Below the pieces are notes generated by a model. That model saw nothing but the letters and a program-made list of their open reading frames with translations, was not told where the DNA came from and did not search any database. From Oopsacas minuta (Eukaryota > Animalia > Porifera), in contig JAKMXF010000310.1 of assembly GCA_024704765.1 (NCBI GenBank), positions 782,400 to 846,399 of the forward strand: a DNA stretch of 64,000 bases, given 5' to 3'. Made by a program: the position numbers and the translations under genes. This document shows, piece after piece, positions 10,769-43,643 of this stretch. Each line of letters opens with the position of its first letter. Position 1 is the first letter of the stretch.

Positions 10769-12463
10769 TTAATTTTTCATGTTCAATATCCTATAAACGA
10801 ACACCAGTTTAGCCGCCTTCTCAATTCCAAGTCGGTTGCGAGTTTTTGACTGTATATATCCAAATGTAGAAAATATACGTTCAATTCCCGCACTTGAAGC
10901 AATTGCGGTGAGAAGTTGTTCAGCAACTTTAGTAATATCTTTCCCCAACGTTCCATGCATTGATGCCCACCAGCAAGCTGGCGTAATATTATCAACTACA
11001 TCGTCACTAAACATGTAGGATTTGAAAGGATCATATCCTGCTTTGAACTGCAAGACAGTCGCCATTGCATTTGGACAATGCTGATGAATATATTCCATTG
11101 CATCGGTAGCTTCTTTCTCAGTGAGTTTTCTTCCTCTATACCTTGGGTCTATTAAGTTCGCAGAAAAGTGTGCTGGAGAAATAGCTTGGGCAGCTCTTTC
11201 GTCTACTTTTCTTAGTACATGTGCCGGTTGCTGTGAACTTAGAAGATCCTCATAAAGTGTTTTCCATACTTCAACTGTATCGCTAATTATAGCATTTTCC
11301 CTTTGAATTCTATCTAGAGCAACTGAAATTGGTTTTAATCTAATAAAGAGATCTTCAGCGTTACGTTTGATAGAATAATTCTTAACTTTATTACCAATGT
11401 TCGAATTTATCTCATCACGATATTCCTCACAGACCTGTACAAGGATATGCCAGTTAGAAATATAGCTTTTCAAACAGTCCGTCAAAGTATTCCATCTAAT
11501 TTCATGTGGGATAACAAGAGAATTACCACCAGCTTGCTTGTATCTAGCTGCAGGTAGATGTGTATGTCTAAAATATTTGACTATCTGGACAACTTGTTCT
11601 TTTACCCCAGTAATCTGTACATCTTGTGCTAATAGGTTCAACAAATGAGCAGAGCATCCGTATGTCAATATTTCATTCGGTATCCTTTTTTGTAAATCTC
11701 TTCTCATTTTTGCCATATTGGCTGCGTTGTCAGTTACAACGTTACGTACATGACATCTAAAATTTATCTCACAGGAAATAATAGCATCTGCAGCAAGTTC
11801 TGCCAGATATTCTGATGTGTGACTATGTCCAGAGGTATCAATTGTCTCAGTAAGGAAAGTCCCTCCTTTGTCAGTTGTAACACTCACACACACGACAGGT
11901 TCATTATGTACGTTACTCCATCCATCCAGTGATAAGGAGACTGTCTTATCCTCCAGGGTTTTTCTGCATGTATCCAAGAGAGATCCTTGTACATTATTTA
12001 ATAGTTTATTCCCTATATCATGGCGATTTGGTGGTATATAACCTGGCCGTAGCATCTTTATTAGTTTCATAAACTCGGGGTGTTCAACAGCTATAAAAGG
12101 CGTGTTAGTTGCGTAAATATAACGAGCAATTTGGAGATCCAGTAATTCTGCCTCTGATTTCGAAGTCTTCATGACATATTCACCGATATGAGTAATCCTA
12201 GGTCTTTTTTCTTTAGCAAAAAGACTTGTATCAGGCACTTCTCCACATAATGCAGTTGATCTGGCTACTAAATCAATTGATTCATTTTCAGCTATTATGG
12301 GATGGTCTTGCATGCTGCATGAAGAATAATGTTGCTTAAGGCGGTTGACCACCCCCTGCATCTCCTTTTTGCAAAGTTTACACCTTGCTTTCCAGCCAGC
12401 AACTCCTTCTGTCGTATACCGTTCGAAGTGGACCCATATATCATCTTGTTTCCTACCTGCCAT
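10769..12463 (-). CDS. hAT transposase (BED zinc finger, DDE, C-terminal dimerisation domain)
   Basis: IWVHF...ARCKLC...LKQHYSSC (BED); SLDGWSN; VTDNAANM; CSAH; IRWNT; SAGIERIFS; no stops in 564 aa. Confidence 0.93.
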   Translation of the reverse strand: MAGRKQDDIWVHFERYTTEGVAGWKARCKLCKKEMQGVVNRLKQHYSSCSMQDHPIIAENESIDLVARSTALCGEVPDTSLFAKEKRPRITHIGEYVMKTSKSEAELLDLQIARYIYATNTPFIAVEHPEFMKLIKMLRPGYIPPNRHDIGNKLLNNVQGSLLDTCRKTLEDKTVSLSLDGWSNVHNEPVVCVSVTTDKGGTFLTETIDTSGHSHTSEYLAELAADAIISCEINFRCHVRNVVTDNAANMAKMRRDLQKRIPNEILTYGCSAHLLNLLAQDVQITGVKEQVVQIVKYFRHTHLPAARYKQAGGNSLVIPHEIRWNTLTDCLKSYISNWHILVQVCEEYRDEINSNIGNKVKNYSIKRNAEDLFIRLKPISVALDRIQRENAIISDTVEVWKTLYEDLLSSQQPAHVLRKVDERAAQAISPAHFSANLIDPRYRGRKLTEKEATDAMEYIHQHCPNAMATVLQFKAGYDPFKSYMFSDDVVDNITPACWWASMHGTLGKDITKVAEQLLTAIASSAGIERIFSTFGYIQSKTRNRLGIEKAAKLVFVYRILNMKN

Positions 12464-12688: not shown

Positions 12689-13607
12689 ACTGTACAAATC
12701 ATTTATTTTTATTTAAATCGAACAACCCTGCCGTCAAATGAATAGATTTTCGATAGGTATAAATTTATAATAGCAAAATGGACATAATCAGCTTGATAAG
12801 ATAATAAAAACATAAAAATATTGAATTGAAAGAAGATATTTTGATAAAACTCGGATTTTTGATTTAAATCATGATTTTTATTAATAAAAATCATTGATTT
12901 AAATCAAACAACCCTGACTTGGAGTGCATGGGAGTAGTTTACCAGGGACAATCCCACTGGCACATATTACCTTTGGGGTGGCATGCCCCGTGCACGAGTT
13001 TACCATGGAGACGTTAATTATTTATTTATTAACTAGATAAACATAAAGCCAGGGGATTTATTGTCTTCTCATACTACTTAACTTACTTAGAGACTGAGGC
13101 CATTACTATTTGACATTAGCATGATGTGATTTTGTAAATATCTTCCCAACTATGTGTAGTCTGTAGTTGAATTATCTAAATGGCACCGCAAGCCATGTAT
13201 GCTAGCTATATGCTATATTGTAGGCTTTGTAGTGGATTGATGTGTATTCCTATTACGTAATTATGGGAATCATAATTTTAAAATTCCCAATTATAGCAAT
13301 GTATTATTTCTACTCAGAAGAATCCTTCTATTATTTTATTGTAACTTCAATTTCTGAGATATAAATATTTTATTTAAATTTTTAATGATTTATTATTTCA
13401 CTAGATTTCCTTATTGAAGTGCTTGACGATATATTCACTTTACAAAACTCAGAACTTTTGCGAATTTGCGAATCGAATATTTCATTTCAACCAAGATCTC
13501 TTTTCTTCGATTTTATAATAAACTTATCGAACGAATTACGAATTTCGAATTGTTTATAAGATCTCTATTGTGTATACTTCGTTCACTAATTACGTCGAAA
13601 TTTGGAA

Positions 13608-15962
13608 ATGAGTGTTTTGGAAGATCAACAATCTTTACCTAACGACAATACTCCTGAGGAGAAAGTGAAGAGAATGGTAGAACCAATAAATCTATTTGAT
13701 CACGAGGAGAGGAACAACAGTCCCTCTCTCCCTCTGCTCACCTGTGAAATAGAGTCTGTACAGTTACTTAGTGTCACGGTAGGATCTGGTGCATTCAGTG
13801 AAATCAGTCAGGTTATATGGTATGGCTCTTATTGCGCTGGAAAACGTATAAACTTGTTTCGTGTATCTCCTAGAGCTGGAAACAGTGATGAAGCATTCCT
13901 ATCATATTGTGAGAGAGCTATGACATTACGTCATCCTAATCTAGTAGAATTCTACGGTGTGTTCAGACCTCGTACAACATGCCCTATCCTTGTCACTGAG
14001 CTGATGTACTGTTCATTACGTCATCGTATAAACGCAGTAGCATATCCCACCCTTACCTTTATAGAGAAGTGTAACATAGCTTACAGTACTATATGTGCAC
14101 TCACTTACCTCCATTCTATCACTCCCCCGCTAAATCACGGTAACCTAACTCCAGATAATATCCTACTCGATCAACAGCTACGTACTAAGGTCTCTGATGC
14201 TGGATTAGCCCGTACTCTAAGTGAGAACCACTCTAACATGCTGGAGTGCTATAAACACGTAGGTATACTAGCATACATGCCTCCGGAAGTAGATACAGAC
14301 TGCTCTACGGCTACTGACGTGTTTAGCTTTGGAGTAGTATTCCTGGAAATGCTGTGTGAGATGTACCCACAGCCTGTAGCAGACCCGGTGATACCAGAAC
14401 CTGACCATCTAAACTCATCAGCTGATCGCACTCAGAACGAGATAGAGAGACGTAGAATGTATCTTAACCTTATACAAGACCGTCCTTTCTGTAGCGAGAT
14501 AATACAGCACTGTCTGTCTGACGAGCCAGAGCAGCGTCCTGTAGCTGACTTCATAGCTAACATATTCAGGAACAAAGGACACGAATGGAAGAACAATGTC
14601 CCTGGGAACAGTGCTAAAATAGAGCTACCTCACTCTTTTATCTTCCCTCCTCCTTCTGACCAGATGCGAGGTAGTGAGATAATGACTCCTACTGAGAAAC
14701 TGATGCTAGGTAACCTGCTAAACAGTCCTAGTCCTGCTGAACCCTCCAAAAGTATGTCTGTTATGTGGAGTGAGGCAAACAAGCATGGAGAGCTCACAGA
14801 TGCAAACAAAATATATTCAAATCCTCTCCCGGGACCCTCCTACTACACGCCAGCTGGTTTTGCTCCATTCCCTATGTCACAACGCGGAAATTTCGGTCCC
14901 TTCATGGGTCCTCACATCCCCATCCCATTTCCCACGGTCCCATCCTACAACTACAATCCCCGTAAGAACCGCATGCCTCTTCAACCTGTACCAGAGATAC
15001 TCTCCAACTACACCCCTGACATGGAAGCACTACGTATAGAAGCTGGGGAGATGTACATAGAACGATTGGAGAGTTCAGCACAGCTAGAACCCATCTCCAC
15101 TGACCACGTGCCTCTCCCCCAGAAGATCGACAGATGTGAAGTAATATCATGTGATAAGATTCTATTCTTATATGACCTACAGGAGGGATTCACGTATGCT
15201 TATGACACTATGGTACAGAAATGGAATGAGGTACCACAGTGTCCTCGTGTAGGTGCTGCTCCTGTATTCTACAAGAACCAGCTAGTAGTTCTTGGAGGTA
15301 AGAAGGACCCTAGCTGTACCTTCATTGGGAAGGAGTTATTCGCGTTGGAATACGACCCCTTACACAGCTCCTGGAGTCAGAAGTATGCCTCTATGCTGAG
15401 ACACAGAAGATTCGCAGTAGCATTCTCTTATCGTGAGTTTATTGTAGTGATAGGAGGTGATTCTGGACTGAATAGTGTAGAAGTATACAGTGGTACCAAG
15501 GATGTATGGTCTCGTGCTGCCAACTTCATTGAAACATCTCGTTTCGTGGATTCTGCTGTTGTTATTAATGACCACGCCTACGTGTTACTGAGCGCTCAGA
15601 CTAAACAGACTCTGAACAAATATTCAGTTGTATACTGGGCTAACTTATCTGTACTGAATGAGGGTAGTGATGATCTAGTATGGTTCCTATTGGATGACAA
15701 GATTGCTCAACCTTCATATGCACTCGCGAAATGGGACAGTTTTCTATTCGCAGTTACCTGTGTTAGACAGTCCTACTCAGAACTTCTTGTATATGATATG
15801 GAGCGTAACCGCTGGGCTTTCCTCTGTAGCCTAAAGGTCAGACACACCCTCTGCGGAACAGGAGTCCTACAGACCGGACATAACTGCGCTCAGATATTTA
15901 TCCTCGGTGGGAATAACAGGGAAGGTGTAGGTGATCTAGTCTCCGTAAAAAGTTTAATTTAA
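13608..15962 (+). CDS. TKL-type (pseudo)kinase fused to C-terminal Kelch repeats
   Basis: GSGAFS, CAGK, LRHPNLVEFYG, HGNLTPDNILL, SDAG, YMPPE, DVFSFG; Pro-rich linker; Kelch blades (LVVLGG, IVVIGG...VEVY...W, IFILGG). First ATG at 13608; the track starts at an upstream TTG. Confidence 0.85.
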   Translation: MSVLEDQQSLPNDNTPEEKVKRMVEPINLFDHEERNNSPSLPLLTCEIESVQLLSVTVGSGAFSEISQVIWYGSYCAGKRINLFRVSPRAGNSDEAFLSYCERAMTLRHPNLVEFYGVFRPRTTCPILVTELMYCSLRHRINAVAYPTLTFIEKCNIAYSTICALTYLHSITPPLNHGNLTPDNILLDQQLRTKVSDAGLARTLSENHSNMLECYKHVGILAYMPPEVDTDCSTATDVFSFGVVFLEMLCEMYPQPVADPVIPEPDHLNSSADRTQNEIERRRMYLNLIQDRPFCSEIIQHCLSDEPEQRPVADFIANIFRNKGHEWKNNVPGNSAKIELPHSFIFPPPSDQMRGSEIMTPTEKLMLGNLLNSPSPAEPSKSMSVMWSEANKHGELTDANKIYSNPLPGPSYYTPAGFAPFPMSQRGNFGPFMGPHIPIPFPTVPSYNYNPRKNRMPLQPVPEILSNYTPDMEALRIEAGEMYIERLESSAQLEPISTDHVPLPQKIDRCEVISCDKILFLYDLQEGFTYAYDTMVQKWNEVPQCPRVGAAPVFYKNQLVVLGGKKDPSCTFIGKELFALEYDPLHSSWSQKYASMLRHRRFAVAFSYREFIVVIGGDSGLNSVEVYSGTKDVWSRAANFIETSRFVDSAVVINDHAYVLLSAQTKQTLNKYSVVYWANLSVLNEGSDDLVWFLLDDKIAQPSYALAKWDSFLFAVTCVRQSYSELLVYDMERNRWAFLCSLKVRHTLCGTGVLQTGHNCAQIFILGGNNREGVGDLVSVKSLI

Positions 15963-19814: not shown

Positions 19815-21299
<1,485 letters not shown>

Positions 21300-24054: not shown

Positions 24055-24610
24055 ATTTTCGAAGCAGAGCTTCAAAAGCTCCAGTTACAGTTGGTGAGGA
24101 GAGAGGAGAGAGATGGGATCATAGAGGGTTACAGAAAAGATACTTGTAATACAAACGATCGCAATTGGGGCAGGACCAATACATGCCCAGGCAAGGACTA
24201 TCAGTACATCCTCAACTATCAGGACTGCTTCAGCAAGTTTGTCATCCTCAGGACTCTCAAGCCCAAGCGAGCGGTAGAGGTAGCCGCCACACATCTTGTA
24301 CACGGATAATGGGAGGGAGTTCGTTAACAAGCATCTATTCACTGCCATGCAGAGACTCTGGACAGGTACACACCTTGTGCAGGGGAGGCTAAGACACTGA
24401 CAAGACCAGGGAAGTGTGGATCGAGCTAATGGTGATTTCAAGAAGCGATTATTCGCCCGTCTCATGGATGCGGGTAAAGAGACCAATGAGTGGGAAAGTG
24501 AGTTACAATTTGTTCAGTATAGTAAGAATAACGCATACCACTCGGTTATTAAGGCGACACCCTTCTCTGTACACTTTGAGAGAACGCCACCGGATCTCAG
24601 TGTGGATATG
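24055..24610 (+). mobile_element. Ginger/KRBA2(SCAND3)-type integrase remnant, copy A
   Basis: YQYILNYQDCFSKFVILRTLKPKRAVEVA; HILYTDNGREF; QGSVDRANGDFKKRL; WESELQFVQYSKNNAYHS across frameshifts. Confidence 0.75.
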
Positions 24611-25822
24611 GCTTACACCTTATATTAACATTACCTCCGGCCAGTCCGAGCCGAGTAACTTGTGTTCCGATCAACAGGGGTACAGTAAGGTTATAGGAAT
24701 CGTCATCAAGATCGTCTGCAAACACAGATGAAGTAGGCCTTAGGATCGTTTGGAGATCGTCCGTATCAGTGTCGTCTGCTGGCGTGTCCTCCTGTTCCTG
24801 AGAGGGAGTTAAAGATGGGTAGGTACTGATATCGTGGGGAGAGCAAGGCTGTGGTAGAGCAATATCAGTGAGTGTGGCGCTCGCTGCAGTATCTATTTCA
24901 CCAGTAGGTTCCTGTAGAGAAAGAGAAGAAAATAACATAGGGCTGGGTGGTGGTGTATGCGGAGTATGAGCATACTCGGTAACCTGTCTGGTAGCTAACG
25001 CATGTTCCAGCTGGTCATCATCATCAAGGGTGTTAAGTACCTTGCATGGCAGTAGCATATCCACACTGAGATCCGGTGGTGTTCTCTCAAAGTGTACAAA
25101 GAAGGGTGTCGCCTTAATACCCGAGTGGTATGCGTTATTCTTACTATACTGAACAAATTGTAACTCACTTTCCCACTCATTGGTCTCTTTACCCGCATCC
25201 ATGAGACGGGCGAATAATCGCTTCTTGAAATCACCATTAGCTCGATCCACACTTCCCTGGTCTTGTCAGTGTCTTAGCCTCCCCTGCACAAGGTGTGTAC
25301 CTGTCCAGAGTCTCTGTATGGCAGTGAATAGATGCTTGTTAACGAACTCCCTCCCATTATCCGTGTACAAGATGTGTGGCGGCTACCTCTACCGCTCGCT
25401 ATGATAGGTCTGTGGATGACTTTCAGTGTAGATTACCTGCCCTTATTGGCTTGGTAAATGGCGCAGAGGCGTACGAAGAGGACAATTACTGCACGAAGCA
25501 CGTGATAGTTGTGGCTCATGAGTATATCCTGTCACGTCCCCCATGACTGAGCTCGTGATGTGCGGCCACTAACGTATCCCACAGGTTTTCCTTGCCACTA
25601 CGCGTAACTTGCTTCGTGTAGTCCGCCGGATTTCACCCCTTTCACGTACAGGACATTTACACCCTTAAACTCCTCCACAGAATGGCGCAATTTTGTCCTT
25701 CCCCAATTGGGATCGTTGGTGTTGCAGCCATCCTCTCTGTAGCTCTCTATGATCCATTTCTCTACTCTCTCCCCACCAAATGTAAATAGATTGAGCTACT
25801 AAAGCTCTGCTTCGAAAATTTC
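24597..25822 (-). mobile_element. Ginger/KRBA2-type integrase remnant, copy B (inverted relative to A)
   Basis: ENLWDTLVAAHHELSHGGRDRI (integrase HH motif, about 25520-25590 minus), the same integrase core as copy A, and an acidic C-terminal tail in ORF 24597-25250. Confidence 0.75.
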
Positions 25823-26512: not shown

Positions 26513-26706
26513 TAGGTGTTTGAGATGATTAATATTCAAAGGCCTTGGTGGGTACTGAAATGGTACATCTTATCAGGAATATATTTTAATCGCGTGGGTA
26601 TTACGGGAGTAACAGTGAATAGCTAGAATTATGTCTATGATTCACTCATACATTGTATACCTACTTTCACAGTTCTGCTAATACTATTTTCTACATTTAA
26701 TAGTCA

Positions 26707-27740
26707 ATGTTAGGTTTATCTAACTATCGTAAAGATTTTCTGTACAGAGCATTAAGACCAGATGAAGATCTTTATAAGGATATTGTATGTAAAGATCGTA
26801 ATTCAAATCGCAGTATTGAAGAACATGTGGAAGACGGACTTGAGTTTCCCTCAAGATTTATAACAATAACTGCTAGTTTTACAAAGGCAAAACATTGGTT
26901 AAACAAATCTATCATACTCCAACAACATCTCCTAATCACCCTAGTAGAATTAGAATAATTAAAATCGATGTCAAAATACTCAAGGACAAATATCCCCAAG
27001 TAGTTAATAATGCTTACAACTTTACTAATTACGAGGTTAGAGGCAAGTTTCTTAAATCAATAACACCTCGCACTTTTGCTATGCCCAATCGAGAGGTTGT
27101 CTTTCAGAATTCCATCTCTTATTGTGCCATCTCTGATATCTATGTATTAAGCAATGGATGGATTGGGACTGCTCCTCCGAAGAAACTTCCTGCTCCAATC
27201 CCTACACATGTACCTTCAACTCCAGTAATTAACCCGATCACTATTCCTACAACTGCTACTCTTAATCCTTCTGCTTTGGCCACTACACTCATTTCTATAC
27301 CTGTACCCACAACTCCAGTTATCGACTCAATCATTGTTCCCAAAACTGATTCTCATATTCCTTCTGCTTTGGTCACTATACCCATTTCTATACCTGTATC
27401 CACATCTCCAGTAATCAACCCTCTTATTAATCCTATACCTGATACTCCTGTTATACAGACTACCTCACCTAGCTCTACGCCTGAATCCTTTTATTCCAGT
27501 ATTTCTACAGTAGATAGAACATTTGATTTTCCTACTCATTCAGATTCATTTATCTCCTCACTTGATATTCCAGCTAACACATTTGAGAACACAACTCTTC
27601 CATCTGTTACAGGTTTAGTAGGAGAGACATGGACAGTTAAACGCAGTCTCTTTGATGGAGACGCAGAATCTGAGAATGATGCTAAGCGTATTTGTATAGA
27701 AGAGGATGAATACAAGGTATCCTATTATATGTATTATTAG
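26707..27740 (+). pseudogene. ADP-ribosyltransferase-like paralog 1, frameshifted
   Basis: ORFs 26707-26958 and 26895-27740 together align with 29288-31142: FLYRALRPDED...SIEEHVEDG...RFITIT / NREVVF. About 4 nt (TTCA) are missing at about 26911 relative to paralog 2. Confidence 0.75.
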
Positions 27741-28456
27741 ATCTATATTGTTGTCTGTTTGTCTGTTGTCAACGAAAAGTTATAGCATGTCATTTTAAAT
27801 TCAATTTCGTGTTCCTAATTATCTTGTTGATGGAGTGAGTATAAATTTTAATACCAATTGGCTAAATATGATCCTCAATTATCACATTTTTGGAATACTT
27901 TAACTCAATGGTTTGTTTATTTGTTTGTCTCGATTTGAGTGGCCACAGGCCAACTTACACTTTCGCCTGCTAACAATCCCTTTGCACAGTCTTGGTTAGT
28001 ATTATAATATCGGTAATATAATTGTTGTTTTTATGATATAAAGAATTTATTTAATTATGTTCAACGGAATGCAACGGCTCAAAGACATTAGACATAGTCT
28101 GGTATAATAATACAAGGATTTCAATTGAGGAGCTTATTGTTTTTCTATTTTTAGATCTCATCAGTGGAATCTCCCTATTAATGATAGTTGGATTATTTAG
28201 ATTTTCTATTAACTAATGAGAATGCTGTAAAGTTAACATATATACTTAGACGTATACTACGCTACATTGTACGCCAGGACCTCAGATTCTTTCATTTCTT
28301 TGTTATTCCAGGAAATCACTCAATAATTAGTTTTCTTATTGTATAATTGATCTTCTGAGTTTTGAATCATTTGTTTTTGGTGTGATGTTGTTTTCTATCA
28401 AGATTATCAATCTCTATTTCCTAATATTTGTTAACCAAAGTCCTCACAAGTATCTA

Positions 28457-28607
28457 CAGTGTAACCTGGTTAATAGGAACACGGTCAATACGAATTTCCG
28501 GTTAATGACGAGAAAATATTTACCCAAATTCAGAGATTGGAATTACTCCTGATAAAGCGAACATAATTTAACCGTCTGTTGGTGTTCTTATTAACGAGGT
28601 TGCACTG
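28457..28607. mobile_element. Tc1/pogo-type MITE
   Basis: TA|CAGTGTAACCTGGTTAATAGGAACAC...GTGTTCTTATTAACGAGGTTGCACTG|TA. Confidence 0.75.
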
Positions 28608-29287
28608 TATGTCCATTCAATTGATTTTGACAATAGTTGGTATGCTCTGTAACTGTAAGATTTGAAAAACAAAATTTGACATTATTTTGATGTTTTTAAC
28701 TGTTAACGGAAGATAATTGCCTACTGCTTTTACAATCAAATTATTATTCGGAACAAAATTAATTGAAGCAAAATCGTAAAAATGGATCAACATTTACTGT
28801 ACTAAAGCTATGTACACATTTATTGAATAATAAATAATCCATGCAAATTATGGAACACCGATTTAAAGTAAAGGTTATGTCTAATGCGCGTATACCGTAA
28901 AATTTATTCATTAATTGAACAGAAACAAATAATTAATTAAGGTTCAGAATATAGGTATAATAACTCTCGACAACAGGGTAATGCTGTTAACAGCTACAAT
29001 TTCCGTGTGCCGTTAACGGCAATGCTGATACCACCCCTACTTTTAAGTCAAACTATAATAATGTGTCTAGAGGTATAGTCAGCTAGTCTATGGTAATCTA
29101 GTGACTTTGGATGAAACACATATTAGTGATTCCTTCTGACGGCTAGTAGAGTATTTTGGTCTCGTGTGGGGCTTCACAATAACCGTCCTGACTCATTAAG
29201 ATTAATGTACGTGCCGTTGTCGGCACTGTAGCCACAACCATAATTATACGTATTAATCGATGGCATTTTCTACATTTCATAGTCACC

Positions 29288-31075
29288 ATGTTAGGTTTAT
29301 CTACATTTGACGAAGATTTTCTGTACAGAGCACTAAGACCAGATGAAGATCCTTATAAGGAAATCGTTTGTAAAGATCGTTATTCAAATCGCAGTATAGA
29401 AGAACATGTGGAAGATGGTCTTAAGATTCCCTCAAAATTTATATCAACAACTGCTAGTTTTACTAAGGCAAAAGAATGGTTGAATACATCTTTCAATCAT
29501 ACTCCATCTAAATATTCTCACCATCCACGTAGGACTACTATAATTAAAATCGATGTCGACTATATCAAGAGAGGATTTCCCCATCTTGTTAATTCTGCTT
29601 ACAACTTCACTGATGAAGAGGTTAGAGACAAGTTTCTTAACTTAAATATAACCAAGAATTATGCCAGAGCTTATCAAGAGGTTGTTTTCCAGAGACCTCT
29701 CCCTTTACAGTCTATATGTGATATTTATGTAAATGGCAAGGGATGGATTGGAATTGATCCTCCAAAGAATGATTCTGTTCCAATTCCTTCCATCCATCCC
29801 CCTGTATCTTCAAAACCAGAAATTAAACCTGTGATCGTTCCTATAGCTGCTCTACCTGATACTCCTGTTAATTTTGATATTACGCCAGTCTCTACACCTG
29901 CATTCGCATCTCAAATAATCGACCCTCTCATTAGTCCTAGAACTGCTTATCCTCTTCGTTCTGTTATGCCAACTACACCAATATCTACACCTTCATCCAC
30001 ACCACCAGTACTCAAACCTCTCATTAGTCCTAGAACTGCTTATCCTCTTCGTTCTGTTATGCCAACTACACCAATATCTACACCTTCATCCACACCACCA
30101 GTACTCAAACCTCTCATTAGTCCTAGAACTGCTCATCCTCTTCGTTCTGTTATGCCAACTACACCAATATCTACACCTTCATCCACACCACCAGTACTCA
30201 AACCGCTCATTAGTCCTAGAACTGCTTATCCTCTTCGTTCTGTTATGCCAACTACACCAATATCTACACCTTCATCCACACCACCAGTACTCAAACCTCT
30301 CATTAGTCCTAGAACTGCTCATCCTCTTCGTTCTGTTATGCCAACTACACCAATATCTACACCTTCATCCACACCACCAGTACTCAAACCGCTCATTAGT
30401 CCTAGAACTGCTTATCCTCTTCGTTCTGTTATGCCAACTACACCGATATCTACACCTTCATCCACACCACCAGTACTCAAACCGCTCATTAGTCCTAGAA
30501 CTGCTTATCCTCTTCGTTCTGTTATGCCAACTACACCAATATCTACACCTTCATCCACACCACCAGTACTCAAACCTCTCATTAGTCCTAGAACTGCTTA
30601 TCCTCTTCGTTCTGTTATGCCAACTACACCAATATCTACACCTTCATCCACACCACCAGTACTCAAACCGCTCATTAGTCCTAGAACTGCTTATCCTCTT
30701 CGTTCTGTTATGCCAACTACACCAATATCTACACCTTCATCCACACCACCAGTACTCAAACCTCTCATTAGTCCTAGAACTGCTTATCCTCTTCGTTCTG
30801 TTATGCCAACTACACCAATATCTACACCTTCATCCACACCACCAGTACTCGACCCTCTCATTAGTCCTAGAACTACTAAACATGTTACTGCACCTACCTT
30901 TTCACCTGTATATAGTAATTCCAGTATTTCTCCAGTAGATAGAACATTTGATATTTCTACCGATTCAGATTCATTTGCCTCTTCAGTTTTTATTCCGCCT
31001 AACTCAATTACAGAGAACACAACTTTCCCAGCTACTACAAGGTTTAGTAAGAGAGACAAGGACAGTAAAGCGTAG
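29288..31075 (+). CDS. RSE-clade (cholera/pertussis/pierisin-like) ADP-ribosyltransferase-like domain plus Ser/Thr/Pro-rich repeat stalk, paralog 2
   Basis: LYR (beta1 Arg), EEH (His as in CT/PT), FISTT (STS-type motif), YQEVVF (catalytic Glu) within the first 150 aa; no signal peptide. The conserved tail is shifted out of frame at about 31040 and continues to 31142. Confidence 0.7.
   Translation: MLGLSTFDEDFLYRALRPDEDPYKEIVCKDRYSNRSIEEHVEDGLKIPSKFISTTASFTKAKEWLNTSFNHTPSKYSHHPRRTTIIKIDVDYIKRGFPHLVNSAYNFTDEEVRDKFLNLNITKNYARAYQEVVFQRPLPLQSICDIYVNGKGWIGIDPPKNDSVPIPSIHPPVSSKPEIKPVIVPIAALPDTPVNFDITPVSTPAFASQIIDPLISPRTAYPLRSVMPTTPISTPSSTPPVLKPLISPRTAYPLRSVMPTTPISTPSSTPPVLKPLISPRTAHPLRSVMPTTPISTPSSTPPVLKPLISPRTAYPLRSVMPTTPISTPSSTPPVLKPLISPRTAHPLRSVMPTTPISTPSSTPPVLKPLISPRTAYPLRSVMPTTPISTPSSTPPVLKPLISPRTAYPLRSVMPTTPISTPSSTPPVLKPLISPRTAYPLRSVMPTTPISTPSSTPPVLKPLISPRTAYPLRSVMPTTPISTPSSTPPVLKPLISPRTAYPLRSVMPTTPISTPSSTPPVLDPLISPRTTKHVTAPTFSPVYSNSSISPVDRTFDISTDSDSFASSVFIPPNSITENTTFPATTRFSKRDKDSKA
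29921..30875 (+). repeat. 93-bp coding tandem repeat, 10 copies plus partial (PLISPRTAYPLRSVMPTTPISTPSSTPPVLK)
   Basis: GACCCTCTCATTAG at 29921 recurs at 30851 (930 bp = 10 x 93); copies are nearly identical. Confidence 0.97.
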
Positions 31076-32091
31076 ATTATTTGATGGAAACTCAGAATCT
31101 GAGAATGATGCTAAGCGTAATTGTGTAGAAGAGAATATCTGATATATTGCAAGTAATTTGCAAATAAAACCATTCTTAATTAGAGTAAAACTCTTTAATA
31201 GTTATTATTAATTTTATGTATACAATTTTGAATTCTAATTCTGTTTTTTATACACATTAGTATGTTTTGTTGTTGTTGTTGTTGTTGTTTTACAGTCATC
31301 TTTTATTATATTTCCTTCAAACAATTCATACCAAATCTGTACTCAGAATGTTTATGATAATGTCTCTTGGGTTTTTCAGAATTTTGAATTTGTATAATAA
31401 ACACCTATTTACCTTGGAAATTGAAATGTCAATATTGTTAATTAAAATATGAATCACTTTTGTGCAATTCTCGTGGCTCATCATTGAATGTATTGCACAC
31501 AACGGCATTAACTTGAGACTGTAATCTGATTAGCCGAGAAGTGTACTGAAAATGCTATTATCAGTTTATCACACCTATTTTAAACCATATTTTACACACA
31601 TTTTGAGTGAAATTCAAATTAATGCTACAGAGTTGCTTCCAACGGCTAAACTAGGGTTATATATTTGCTGATTTCAGATTTATCATTATACATGTCTATG
31701 GCCTACTTAATACACGACCGTGTATGTCACCGAGTAGGCGATTTCATTTTACTATTTTAAAACAAAAAACAAATTAAAGCTTTTAACATTTGCTAATTAA
31801 ACTTTCTAGGGATTTCCGTATATGAGGAGTTCATTGAGACTACTTAGCAAGTTCTTACGACTATCTTACATATCGTTTAGTCTATTTTGAAAATTATGAC
31901 ATTAATCTATATTATTAAATTGTTACTTTTGTCTGTCTGTCTATTTGTCCGTTGTCAAGCGAAGGATTTATGGAATGTTGTATAGAATTCGAATTTCTCA
32001 ATTCTGAGATGTCGCATAACTACCAGCATTGCCGTTAAATTTTTGTGATCACCAAGAAAGTAAACATAGTTCAATAAAACTTTACTAAATA

Positions 32092-41541: not shown

Positions 41542-43643
41542 CAGTAAACAGCGGCTTTAACGGCAAATCGCTTATAACGACTCATTTTGCTTGCCCAGAA
41601 TCTCGCAGCATTATTCTGCACACACCATACCTCGAGTATAACGACCTATCAGATAACGACACATTGAATTTAACGACATATTTTCTATGCCTGCTCCATG
41701 CAAATCCAATTCGATATTACGACTTTTGGGTTGTCTATACTGTGGACCTAAGAAAAGTGTACTTGTGAATTATTAAGGGTTTAATAATTGATTTAATTAT
41801 AAAACAATTAAAATCTCCTTTTGAATCAATAGCACCTGGCTTCTTACGAAAACGCTTATTAAAAGCTATTGTACGTACAATGTAATGTTAAAATTTAATC
41901 GTCATGGATTCGAGCGGACTTGGCAAAAGGAAGCGCTTTTCTTTTGCTGAAAAACACAAAATTTTGAAGGAGCTTGATGCAGGAGCTAAGCGACCATTCT
42001 TGGAGCTGAAACATGGCATTTCACATGGGACCCTAGCCGGCTTCTTGAAAGATCGGGCGATGATTGAAACTTCCATCGCAAGTGCATCAAATCTTGATTC
42101 GAAGAGCACAAAGCTGTCTCGATACCCGGAGATAGACACTGCACTGCTTGAGTGGTTTCGTTGTTTGAAGAGCACAGCTCCAGATGAGTCAGTCACCGGT
42201 CCCTTTCTTCTAGAAAAGTCGATATGCATTGCGGAGAAACTGAAAGTACGAAATGTGCCTGGCTACCTCGAACCTGTGTTCCTTGATCTGAACTGGATAG
42301 ATCGTTGGAAGAAGCGCCATAACATCACCAGCCGTCAAATCTCGGGTGAGAGCCAATCAGCAGATCACGCTGGTGCTGACAACTGGATATCAACGTAGCT
42401 GAAACTGATCAGAGAAGAGTTTGAAGACAAGGATATTTTCAATGCTGATGAGACTGGGCTATTCTGGAAGATGACACCAGACAGACTTTGTCTTTCCGAG
42501 GAGACTTGTGCAAAGGAGGCAAGCGCTCCAAGGAACGCCTCACTGTATTGGTAGTAGCTAGTGCGCTTGGGGAGAGGTTTCCGCTACTCGTTATTGGAAA
42601 GAGTAAGCGCCCCCACTGTTTCCGAGGCGTCCTGAATCTTCCAGTGGAGTATGATGCCAATCGAACCGCATGGATGACAAGTGAGATTTTTGAGAAATGG
42701 CTAAGGAAGTTGAACAATTCTATGAGATTTGACGACAGGAAAATCGCCATGATTCTTGACAACGTCTCAGGTCATCCGAACCTTAACTTGTCCCATATCA
42801 AGCTTTTCTTTCTCCCACCCAACACAACGTCTATGACTCAGCCCATGGACGCAGGTATAATCAAGAACCTCAAGCACCACTACCGCCGGTTTCTTATTAG
42901 GAAGCGTTTATTGGCAGTTGATTCTGAAACGGGGTTCAAACTTGACTTGCTCCAGGCCTTGGACTGGCTAAAAATGTCCTGGGATAATGTCACCCCCACG
43001 ACCATCAAGCATTGCTATCAGCATGTTGGGTTCAAGGATTTACCTGCCACTGAAGAAACCTCAGCACCTGACACATCAATTTGGAGCAGTGCTGAAGAAG
43101 CAGGGCTTGTTTCGGATGGCTTATCATTTGAGGACTTTGTTGCTCTGGATGATGGTGTTGCAATTGGACCTGGTGCAAATGGTCTCAAAATTGACGATAT
43201 CCTTAATAGTCTGCACCCTCCAAGTGATGACGATGTTAATATCGAAAATGACGACAATGAATATCCCCCCAATATCCATGTTCTGTAATTCGACACTGTT
43301 GTCTCATGCCTTGACACCGTTATGAAGTTCTTGCGCACCCTCCCATGCTCAGAGAAACAGATTCAGTCTGTCAGCGAACTCCAAAACTTCTTGGCTGAAA
43401 GTCAGCTGAGTCGATTGCAGCAGGCCTCAATAACTAGCTTTTTCAAGTCAAACTAATCATATTCATGACATTATTATGACGATAATACAACAACATAGTA
43501 TACTACATCGTATAACACGAATATATTTGGGTGTCATCCGGTATATAATGCATATATAAAGCTTCCTCGGATTTAGCGACAAATCGGATATAGCGACCTT
43601 TTTTGCCTGCCCAAACGAGTGTCGTTAAATCCAATGTTTACTG
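41542..43643 (+). mobile_element. pogo/Tigger DNA transposon, full length
   Basis: TA|CAGTAAACAGCGGCTTTAACGGCA...TGTCGTTAAATCCAATGTTTACTG|TA; internal CENP-B-type transposase. Confidence 0.9.
41904..43288 (+). pseudogene. pogo/Tigger (CENP-B-like) transposase with one nonsense codon and one frameshift
   Basis: HTH (KRKRFSFAEK...LLEWF...WIDRWKKRHNI), TAG at 42396, IFNADETGLFWK, 1-nt shift at about 42487, then LDNVSGH...LPPNTTSMTQPMDAGII. Confidence 0.9.

Follow-up and report, generated by a model that had tools for sequence, protein, structure and literature searches.

The genome of the glass sponge Oopsacas minuta carries two tandem paralogous genes of the CARP-1/DUF7587 family within a 64,000-nucleotide stretch of contig JAKMXF010000310.1 (assembly GCA_024704765.1, positions 782,400 to 846,399, forward strand; hereafter the window). 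The locus is best read as a tandem pair of sponge genes that would encode intracellular mono-ADP-ribosyltransferases (ARTs) with a cholera-toxin-like Arg-Ser-Glu (R-S-E) active site, a reading to which a probability of about 0.6 is assigned. The catalytic domain is common to the window genes and the C-terminal tips of bacterial Rhs and PT-HINT polymorphic toxins. In the mechanism proposed here, the enzyme of the second copy would bind NAD+ and transfer ADP-ribose, and its target would more likely be a nucleic-acid base than protein arginine, by analogy with CARP-1 and with pierisin and Scabin. The conserved basic tail of intact family members would act in nuclear import, and the family would form a fast-evolving birth-and-death gene set for defence or programmed cell killing.

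In animals, enzymes that attach ADP-ribose to DNA bases have been described from two sources only, the pierisins of butterflies and CARP-1 of clams. Glass sponges have a separate, greatly enlarged branch of the CARP-1 family (a domain of unknown function in Pfam), in which the ART domain is followed by a long disordered repeat linker and then by a tail that resembles a nuclear signal or by a membrane anchor. This architecture gives testable hints on the intracellular site of action, and the locus is an example of a bacterial toxin domain domesticated by an early-branching animal.

The tandem pair and its duplicated unit

The reference copies are copy 1 (26707-27740) and copy 2 (29288-31142), both on the + strand of the window. 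Each consists of an upstream block, an N-terminal domain of about 150 amino acids (aa), a Ser/Thr/Pro (S/T/P)-rich repeat region and a basic tail; all four shared features had been named in a preliminary description of this DNA, and all four are present. The features of the pair, including open reading frames (ORFs), are as follows.

26687-26706, + strand: upstream block of copy 1, found by pattern match; first bases of the duplicated unit
26707-27740, + strand: copy 1, a broken CARP-1-family (DUF7587) ART gene, from ORFs and comparison with copy 2
26707-27206, + strand: ART-homologous stretch of copy 1, in two frames, from comparison with copy 2
27202-27447, + strand: 93-bp tandem repeat of copy 1, the S/T/P-rich linker; 2.6 copies, 77% matches
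27606-27716, + strand: basic tail of copy 1 (VKRSLFDG...AKR.C...), ending at an AG|GT site that resembles a splice donor
29266-29285, + strand: upstream block of copy 2, found by pattern match and read as for copy 1
29288-31142, + strand: copy 2, a CARP-1-family ART gene, with a 595-codon ORF from its first base
29288-29752, + strand: predicted ART domain of copy 2, aa 1-155, with R14, H40, S53-T54-T55 and Y129-x-E131
29924-30874, + strand: 93-bp tandem repeat of copy 2; 10.2 copies, 98% matches, 31-aa S/T/P-rich unit
31035-31136, + strand: tail-homologous stretch of copy 2 (VKRRLFDG...AKR.C...), off-frame relative to the 595-codon ORF

The duplicated unit extends over 26686-27707 and 29265-31136 with about 74% nucleotide identity. 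Outside the unit, similarity between the copies is undetectable except for one 60-nt stretch, about 77% identical, that lies 3' of both copies (27752-27808 and 31938-31997) at differing distances from the tails and may be read either as a repeat or as a conserved element. A short (TTG)n microsatellite is located just 3' of copy 2 (31267-31290). The N-terminal domains of the two copies are 79% identical over the first 68 aa and 43-49% identical over the remainder. The ratio of nonsynonymous to synonymous divergence (dN/dS) between the copies is 0.35 in the first part of the domain, 0.73 in its second part and 0.56 in the tail. The copies differ by a synonymous divergence (dS) of 0.2-0.5, and their duplication therefore postdates the split from the species of a related, diverged sponge assembly (L002).

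Family and fold of the ART domain

Residues 1-170 of copy 2, used as the query of an exhaustive HMMER search, retrieved 124 homologs (E<=1e-3). Across 87 aligned sequences, R14, G44, S53 and E131 are invariant, and R17, E20, H40, I52, T54, I88, V132 and P139 are conserved in at least 90%. Column conservation in the family reaches 100% for R14, S53 and E131, 98% for H40 and 91% for T54, and copy 2 matches all five. The Pfam family DUF7587 (PF24494) was matched by 86 of the 87 relatives; what had been implied earlier to be a new family is this DUF7587/CARP-1 family, with further members in bivalves, an octocoral, a fungus and the Rhs and PT-HINT toxins of bacteria. Weak matches among the 87 relatives include NarE in three and a Scabin-like family in two (E about 0.004); the window domain itself gave no Scabin-like Pfam match, and the sponge domain had no match in NCBIfam or PADLOC. 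PDB entry 2KXI is presumably NarE, a point on which a literature search was uninformative.

A single-sequence search of the PDB with the copy 2 domain gave only a marginal match (E 0.095). The family profile, searched against the same database, matched chain B of 9ZDM, the toxin tip RhsF-CT, over the whole domain with E 1.2e-15, and the alignments map R14, S53 and E131 onto R1403, S1445 and E1497 of RhsF-CT. The AlphaFold2 model of the copy 2 domain has a predicted local distance difference test (pLDDT) score of 91.6 and a predicted template modelling (pTM) score of 0.85, with strands at 11-15, 52-55 and 131-134 and a helix at 58-70. The order of its elements is a strand with Y-R, a helix with H40, a strand I-S-T-T followed by a helix, and a strand that starts at E131. 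The top Foldseek matches of this model in the PDB are all R-S-E ART toxins, with probability 1.00, template modelling (TM) scores of about 0.5 and E down to 1.6e-5. They comprise pertussis S1, EcPltA, typhoid PltA, cholera A1, heat-labile enterotoxin (LT) A1, CARDS, TreX/TreTu and Scabin, the last at ranks 47 and 49 with TM 0.5.

The residue two before the catalytic Glu is Tyr in 41, Ser in 28 and Phe in seven of the 87 sequences, and never Glu or Gln. Copy 2 carries Y129 at this position and reads Y-Q-E, so that the E/Q-x-E motif of the ADP-ribosylating turn-turn (ARTT) loop is absent from it as from the rest of the family. A simple scan of the first 30 aa found no hydrophobic run in any of 68 proteins with an N-terminal ART domain, in line with the absence of a signal peptide proposed in the preliminary description. 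Its assignment of the domain to toxin-like R-(H)-S-E ARTs of the cholera, pertussis, pierisin and Scabin kind is borne out by the invariant residues, the profile match and the AlphaFold2/Foldseek comparison, which had been suggested as a check and which recovered pertussis S1, EcPltA, cholera A1 and Scabin. Taken together, the domain almost certainly has a cholera-toxin-like R-S-E ART fold and belongs to the DUF7587/CARP-1 family.

Relation to CARP-1 and other ADP-ribosyltransferases

CARP-1 of Meretrix lamarckii (UniProt Q0KK23, 182 aa; P0228 among the proteins collected here) carries PF24494. It was reached by a search with a clam-like relative, P0066, which is itself a match of the window domain; it was not returned by name in profile searches with the window family, nor in cluster look-ups. 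Copy 2 and CARP-1 are 32% identical over 144 aa (BLASTP, E 3e-14), and a comparison of the profiles of the sponge subfamily and the CARP-1 clade with hhalign gave a probability of 99.55% and E 2.3e-23. Invariant residues of the CARP-1 clade are R9, H36, S47, T48, Y126 and E128, which match the R, H, S-T and Y-x-E of copy 2; E128 is taken to be the catalytic Glu, in agreement with the alignment made here. CARP-1 ADP-ribosylates the N2 of guanine in double-stranded DNA; it lacks a receptor-binding domain and is lethal to cells only once introduced into them. In a 2026 paper, its homologues are reported mainly from bivalves and also from Cnidaria and Porifera, and CARP-1 is described as an exception among nucleotide-modifying ARTs in having Tyr, not Glu or Gln, two positions before the catalytic Glu (PMC12945103).

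When 208 domains were roughly clustered, four groups emerged: about 60 sponge-type domains, those of the window genes among them; about 60 of bivalve/octocoral type; about 43 of bacterial Rhs/PT-HINT type; and 15 that fall with CARP-1. Labelled members of the other three groups are all at a roughly similar distance from the window domain (26-38% identity). By these distances, the window domain is a member of the family and not a CARP-1 ortholog.

The sponge genes share with CARP-1 the Pfam family, the motif order R, H, S-T-T, Y-x-E, an animal genome and the lack of a signal peptide and of a receptor-binding domain. Unlike CARP-1, which is a single-domain protein, they are extended by S/T/P repeats of 150-440 aa and by a basic tail; they also form a separate clade, and DNA-guanine activity is established for CARP-1 alone. 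The closest solved structure by sequence, and one determined only recently, is RhsF-CT (PDB 9ZDM), the Rhs tip of a type VI secretion system of Chromobacterium violaceum. Its structure paper describes it as ADP-ribosyltransferase-like and closest to ScARP and EcPltA, with a catalytic site of R1403, S1445, Y1456 and E1497 that is occluded by the immunity protein. RhsF-CT forms the C-terminal end of a secreted Rhs protein and has a cognate immunity protein, whereas the sponge domain is N-terminal and has no Rhs core, and no immunity-like neighbour gene was found in the window.

Pierisin, Scabin and ScARP have the R-S-E ART fold and are guanine-specific, the same substrate class as CARP-1, but they carry Q-x-E where the window family has Y/S-x-E, and pierisin in addition has ricin-type lectin domains and enters cells from outside. 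Pertussis S1, EcPltA, typhoid PltA, cholera and LT A1 and CARDS are the best structural matches (E 1.6e-5 to 1e-3), with similar spacing of R, H, S-T-S and E; they differ in being secreted AB toxins that modify host proteins, are only 14-20% identical at TM about 0.5, and gave no sequence-level match to the window domain. The vertebrate ecto-ARTs (ARTC1-5) are also of the R-S-E class, and both they and the poly(ADP-ribose) polymerases (PARPs) use NAD+, but ARTCs have a signal peptide and a glycosylphosphatidylinositol anchor or are secreted, and PARPs have H-Y-E. Neither ARTCs nor PARPs were returned by any of the searches made here.

State of the two copies

Several points weigh against reading the locus as a pair of transferase genes with the proposed target. 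The domain, linker and tail are never in one reading frame in either copy, each of which has one frame change, and the tail is off-frame in the sole window copy with an intact domain; nuclear targeting is for this reason not claimed for this locus. Taken alone, copy 2 scores 24.5 bits against DUF7587, under the Pfam cut-off of 27 bits. The convergence of the Arg, Ser and Glu residues on an NAD pocket would follow by homology from 9ZDM, and the substrate of RhsF-CT was not identified in its structure paper. The sponge clade is about as far from CARP-1 (32% identity) as from bacterial Rhs tips (35%), so that transfer of the substrate by homology is uncertain, and the copy 2 ART domain is near neutral (isoelectric point (pI) 7.8) compared with the basic residues 1-150 of CARP-1 (pI 9.5), which makes the case for DNA binding weaker.

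In copy 1 the frame change falls within the ART domain, and one of the four residues that are invariant in the family is substituted. With an interrupted domain and an incomplete set of invariant residues, copy 1 is likely a pseudogene. Its public annotation covers the 3' part only, from an internal Met past the R, H and S motifs. The annotated model has a splice after the tail to a 27-nt exon at 28155-28181 that is conserved neither in copy 2 nor in L002; because no conserved exon downstream of the tail was found among both copies, L002 and a further assembly (L003), this exon is weak. In copy 2, the 595-codon ORF holds a complete ART domain and the repeat linker, with all ten repeats in frame and every invariant and nearly invariant residue of the family retained, while one frame change shifts the tail stretch relative to copy 1 and to relatives. 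The preliminary description had taken both copies as whole genes, a view that does not survive the frame change in each. These changes are probably real, because the assembly combines Illumina and PacBio reads and was polished with Pilon.

Given this state, both copies could be non-functional remnants of a large birth-and-death family, with their conserved features reflecting only a recent duplication. Such an explanation accommodates the frame change in each copy, the missing invariant residue and truncated public annotation of copy 1, the dN/dS of 0.35-0.73 between the copies and the many short, apparently broken family fragments, such as proteins of 105-131 aa, in related assemblies. It is harder to reconcile with the long ORF of copy 2 and its full residue set and in-frame repeats. 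Moreover, similarity between the copies ends at exon-like bounds although dS is only 0.2-0.5, which fits selection on a coding exon. Judged by a dN/dS of 0.27 between the copy 2 domain and its ortholog P0001 of L002 (0.013 for the neighbouring gene TIP49 by comparison), the domain is under purifying selection relative to that ortholog. Decay of both copies is accordingly held to be rather unlikely, and the copy 2 domain is judged, on balance, to be catalytically competent. As a transferase gene, copy 2 would either work without its tail or have begun to decay.

Linker, tail and exon boundaries

The S/T/P-rich region consists in both copies of the 93-bp (31-aa) tandem repeat. The copy 2 linker is 53% S/T/P and holds 46 SP/TP dipeptides, and no [ST]Px[KR] site was found in it. 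In the model of the intact ortholog P0001, pLDDT stays under 50 from residue 154 up to the C-terminus; its linker and tail are predicted to be disordered, and by analogy the copy 2 linker is probably disordered as well.

The tails of copy 1 and copy 2 are identical at 24 of 34 aa. Tails were surveyed in the 68 related proteins in which an N-terminal ART domain is followed by 50 or more residues. A common motif, present at the end of 20 of them, consists of a hydrophobic residue, K-R, a basic or Ser residue and a second conserved K 12-15 residues on; within the subfamily, the K-R pair and the second K vary hardly or not at all. A loose bipartite nuclear localisation signal (NLS) pattern was found in 12 of the 20 tail-bearing proteins; in the window copies, no more than two basic residues make up the second cluster. 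The nuclear tail of the preliminary description holds to the extent that an NLS-like basic tail recurs in relatives, but not for copy 2, where it is out of frame. The simplest reading of the basic tail in intact family members is a nuclear import signal, a tentative and somewhat doubtful proposal.

The earlier model in full was that of a nuclear, cyclin-docked and cell-cycle-regulated ART. Both window tails do read R-x-L-F after the K-R pair, and the abundant SP/TP dipeptides of the linker are of the kind that this model would call for. However, RxL(x)-hydrophobic occurs in only three of the 20 tail-bearing relatives, the syntenic ortholog has no Leu-Phe at that place, the motif is out of frame in copy 2, and the lack of full [ST]Px[KR] sites speaks against cell-cycle regulation. 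The cyclin-docking reading is thus not supported, and the model as a whole is very improbable.

Ten other N-terminal-ART proteins end in hydrophobic, Cys-rich segments that resemble tail anchors. This tail-anchor-type sister subfamily (P0010, P0011, P0015, P0016, P0017, P0019, P0020, P0025, P0143 and P0144) suggests membrane-tethered cytosolic enzymes.

The upstream block is a pyrimidine-rich run of 20 nt that ends in AG just 5' of the ATG. Its pattern has two matches in the window and none in 100 shuffles. The block itself is not conserved in seven relatives; in five of these, a pyrimidine-rich run with a terminal AG lies a few bases 5' of the ATG. It is probably the 3' splice acceptor of an intron in the 5' untranslated region (5'-UTR). 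Directly after the tail, AG|GT occurs at the same position in copy 1 and in all four relatives whose DNA was examined. The large coding exon would be bounded by the 5'-UTR acceptor and by a donor after the tail, which would explain why similarity between the copies starts and stops exactly there.

Possible target and role of the family

The first Glu of the E/Q-x-E motif marks arginine-specific transferases, and the absence of this motif speaks against arginine-specific modification of proteins. Because of this, and because the only characterised member of the family modifies DNA guanine, a nucleic-acid base is preferred as the target, although this preference, drawn by analogy, is held at somewhat less than even odds. 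The idea of a DNA-guanine target, which had earlier been raised by comparison with pierisin and Scabin, gains support from the membership of CARP-1 in the family.

Alternatively, the enzyme may modify proteins or hydrolyse NAD+ in the cytoplasm and leave nuclear DNA untouched. The best fold matches, including pertussis S1, EcPltA, PltA, cholera A1 and TreX/TreTu, are protein-modifying toxins, and MTX, a member of the pierisin family, modifies protein (PMC12945103). The lack of a named RhsF-CT target and the lack of basic character in the copy 2 domain are also compatible with such an activity, and the anchors of the ten sponge-type relatives would place those enzymes at a membrane and not in the nucleus. 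Set against these observations are the missing E/Q-x-E motif, the guanine specificity of CARP-1 as the sole member with a known substrate, and a NADAR gene that adjoins family genes in another animal assembly. A protein target or NAD+ hydrolysis is the main rival and is held to be only slightly less probable than a nucleic-acid base.

Bacterial members of the family carry the domain after an Rhs core, YD repeats or PT-HINT, the classic layout of polymorphic toxins. The window domain departs from this layout: it stands at the N-terminus, and no other module precedes it. Among eukaryotes, the named members belong to Ruditapes, Mercenaria, Mytilus, Meretrix, the octocoral Paramuricea and the fungus Actinomortierella. 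One protein of 636 aa on short metagenome contigs (P0059/P0129) combines a ricin-type lectin with a C-terminal DUF7587, an AB-toxin-like layout that recalls pierisin and MTX with the order reversed. In related assemblies, family paralogs cluster on single contigs. A role in conflict or defence would fit this clustering, the rapid evolution, the broken copies and the toxin ancestry, none of which prove such a role.

NADAR enzymes strip ADP-ribose from guanine. At two loci of one related assembly (ERZ25067548; L004:3001-6672 and L007:2698-12435), a family member lies about 1.5 kb from a divergently oriented NADAR-like gene, which consists of two ORF pieces; both score below threshold, and they cover positions 2-57 and 97-162 of the profile. 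Downstream there is a gene that resembles DEDDh_C exonucleases. The NADAR sides of L004 and L007 are 96% identical, and beyond them the two loci diverge, so that the pairing represents one event in two copies. At two further loci, from two other assemblies (L005:3289-15440 and L006:1373-11800), family members are flanked by several DEDDh_C ORFs, and L005 also has a full-length retrotransposon pol ORF nearby. Neither NADAR nor DEDDh_C genes were found in the O. minuta window. The neighbours at L004 and L007 may form an animal writer-eraser pair, of which this NADAR neighbour would be the first genomic hint.

In its boldest form, the proposal would be that glass sponges have turned an Rhs-type toxin domain into a large family of nucleus-directed DNA-base ARTs, which act as endogenous genotoxic effectors against infected or unwanted cells or invading DNA and which in related animals are paired with a NADAR eraser. 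This is improbable as a whole; if true, the domesticated ART and NADAR would constitute an animal writer-eraser system for ADP-ribosylation of DNA bases.

The fold class, the DUF7587 family and the presence of CARP-1 homologues in Porifera are already on record. In the literature searched, no earlier description was found of a sponge-specific clade with a repeat linker and a basic tail or membrane anchor, nor of an explicit sequence link between CARP-1/DUF7587 and the solved RhsF-CT tip.

Genomic setting

The locus lies on a contig of 1.35 Mb. The O. minuta genome is compact (61 Mb, about 1.6 introns per gene), which accounts for the many long uninterrupted ORFs. Neighbours in the window include an SH3-SH2 protein, a TKL kinase with SAM, a kinase with Kelch repeats, a hAT transposase, TIP49/RuvBL, a retroelement integrase fragment, ankyrin, a pogo-type transposase, NHL, HAD and TSR2. 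In L002, the kinase-Kelch and TIP49 genes are followed by a single family member, P0001; its TIP49 has 97% protein identity to that of O. minuta, with dS saturated at 1.8.

The occurrence of the domain in bacterial Rhs and PT-HINT toxins raises the question of bacterial or symbiont contamination, or of a very recent unexpressed transfer. This origin is extremely improbable in view of the long contig with its SH2/SH3, TKL-kinase, TIP49, ankyrin, NHL and TSR2 genes, a GC content that matches the surroundings, splice-like signals that bound the exon and a syntenic ortholog in a relative as diverged as L002. Because of that synteny and the animal gene neighbours, the two copies are, as far as gene context can tell, resident sponge genes, and the animal encoding assumed in the preliminary description is upheld by the assignment of the contig to O. 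minuta. A fungal origin had also been suspected from the long intronless ORFs, the TKL kinases and the low GC, and was ruled out, the contig being that of Oopsacas minuta.

The intronless TIP49/RuvBL gene (19914-21299) and the kinase-Kelch gene (13602-15962) keep their order and orientation in L002 and serve as the synteny anchor. Between TIP49 and copy 1, a retroelement integrase-like ORF fragment occurs twice, inverted, at 24085-25404. Because L002 has the ART gene directly after TIP49, this stretch is read as an insertion or rearrangement in O. minuta. Two further mobile-element genes are present in the window: a hAT-type transposase ORF with DUF659 and hAT dimerisation domains (10769-12463, - strand), and a pogo/Tc5-type transposase in two adjacent ORFs with HTH_Tnp_Tc5 and DDE_1 (41904-43288, + strand).

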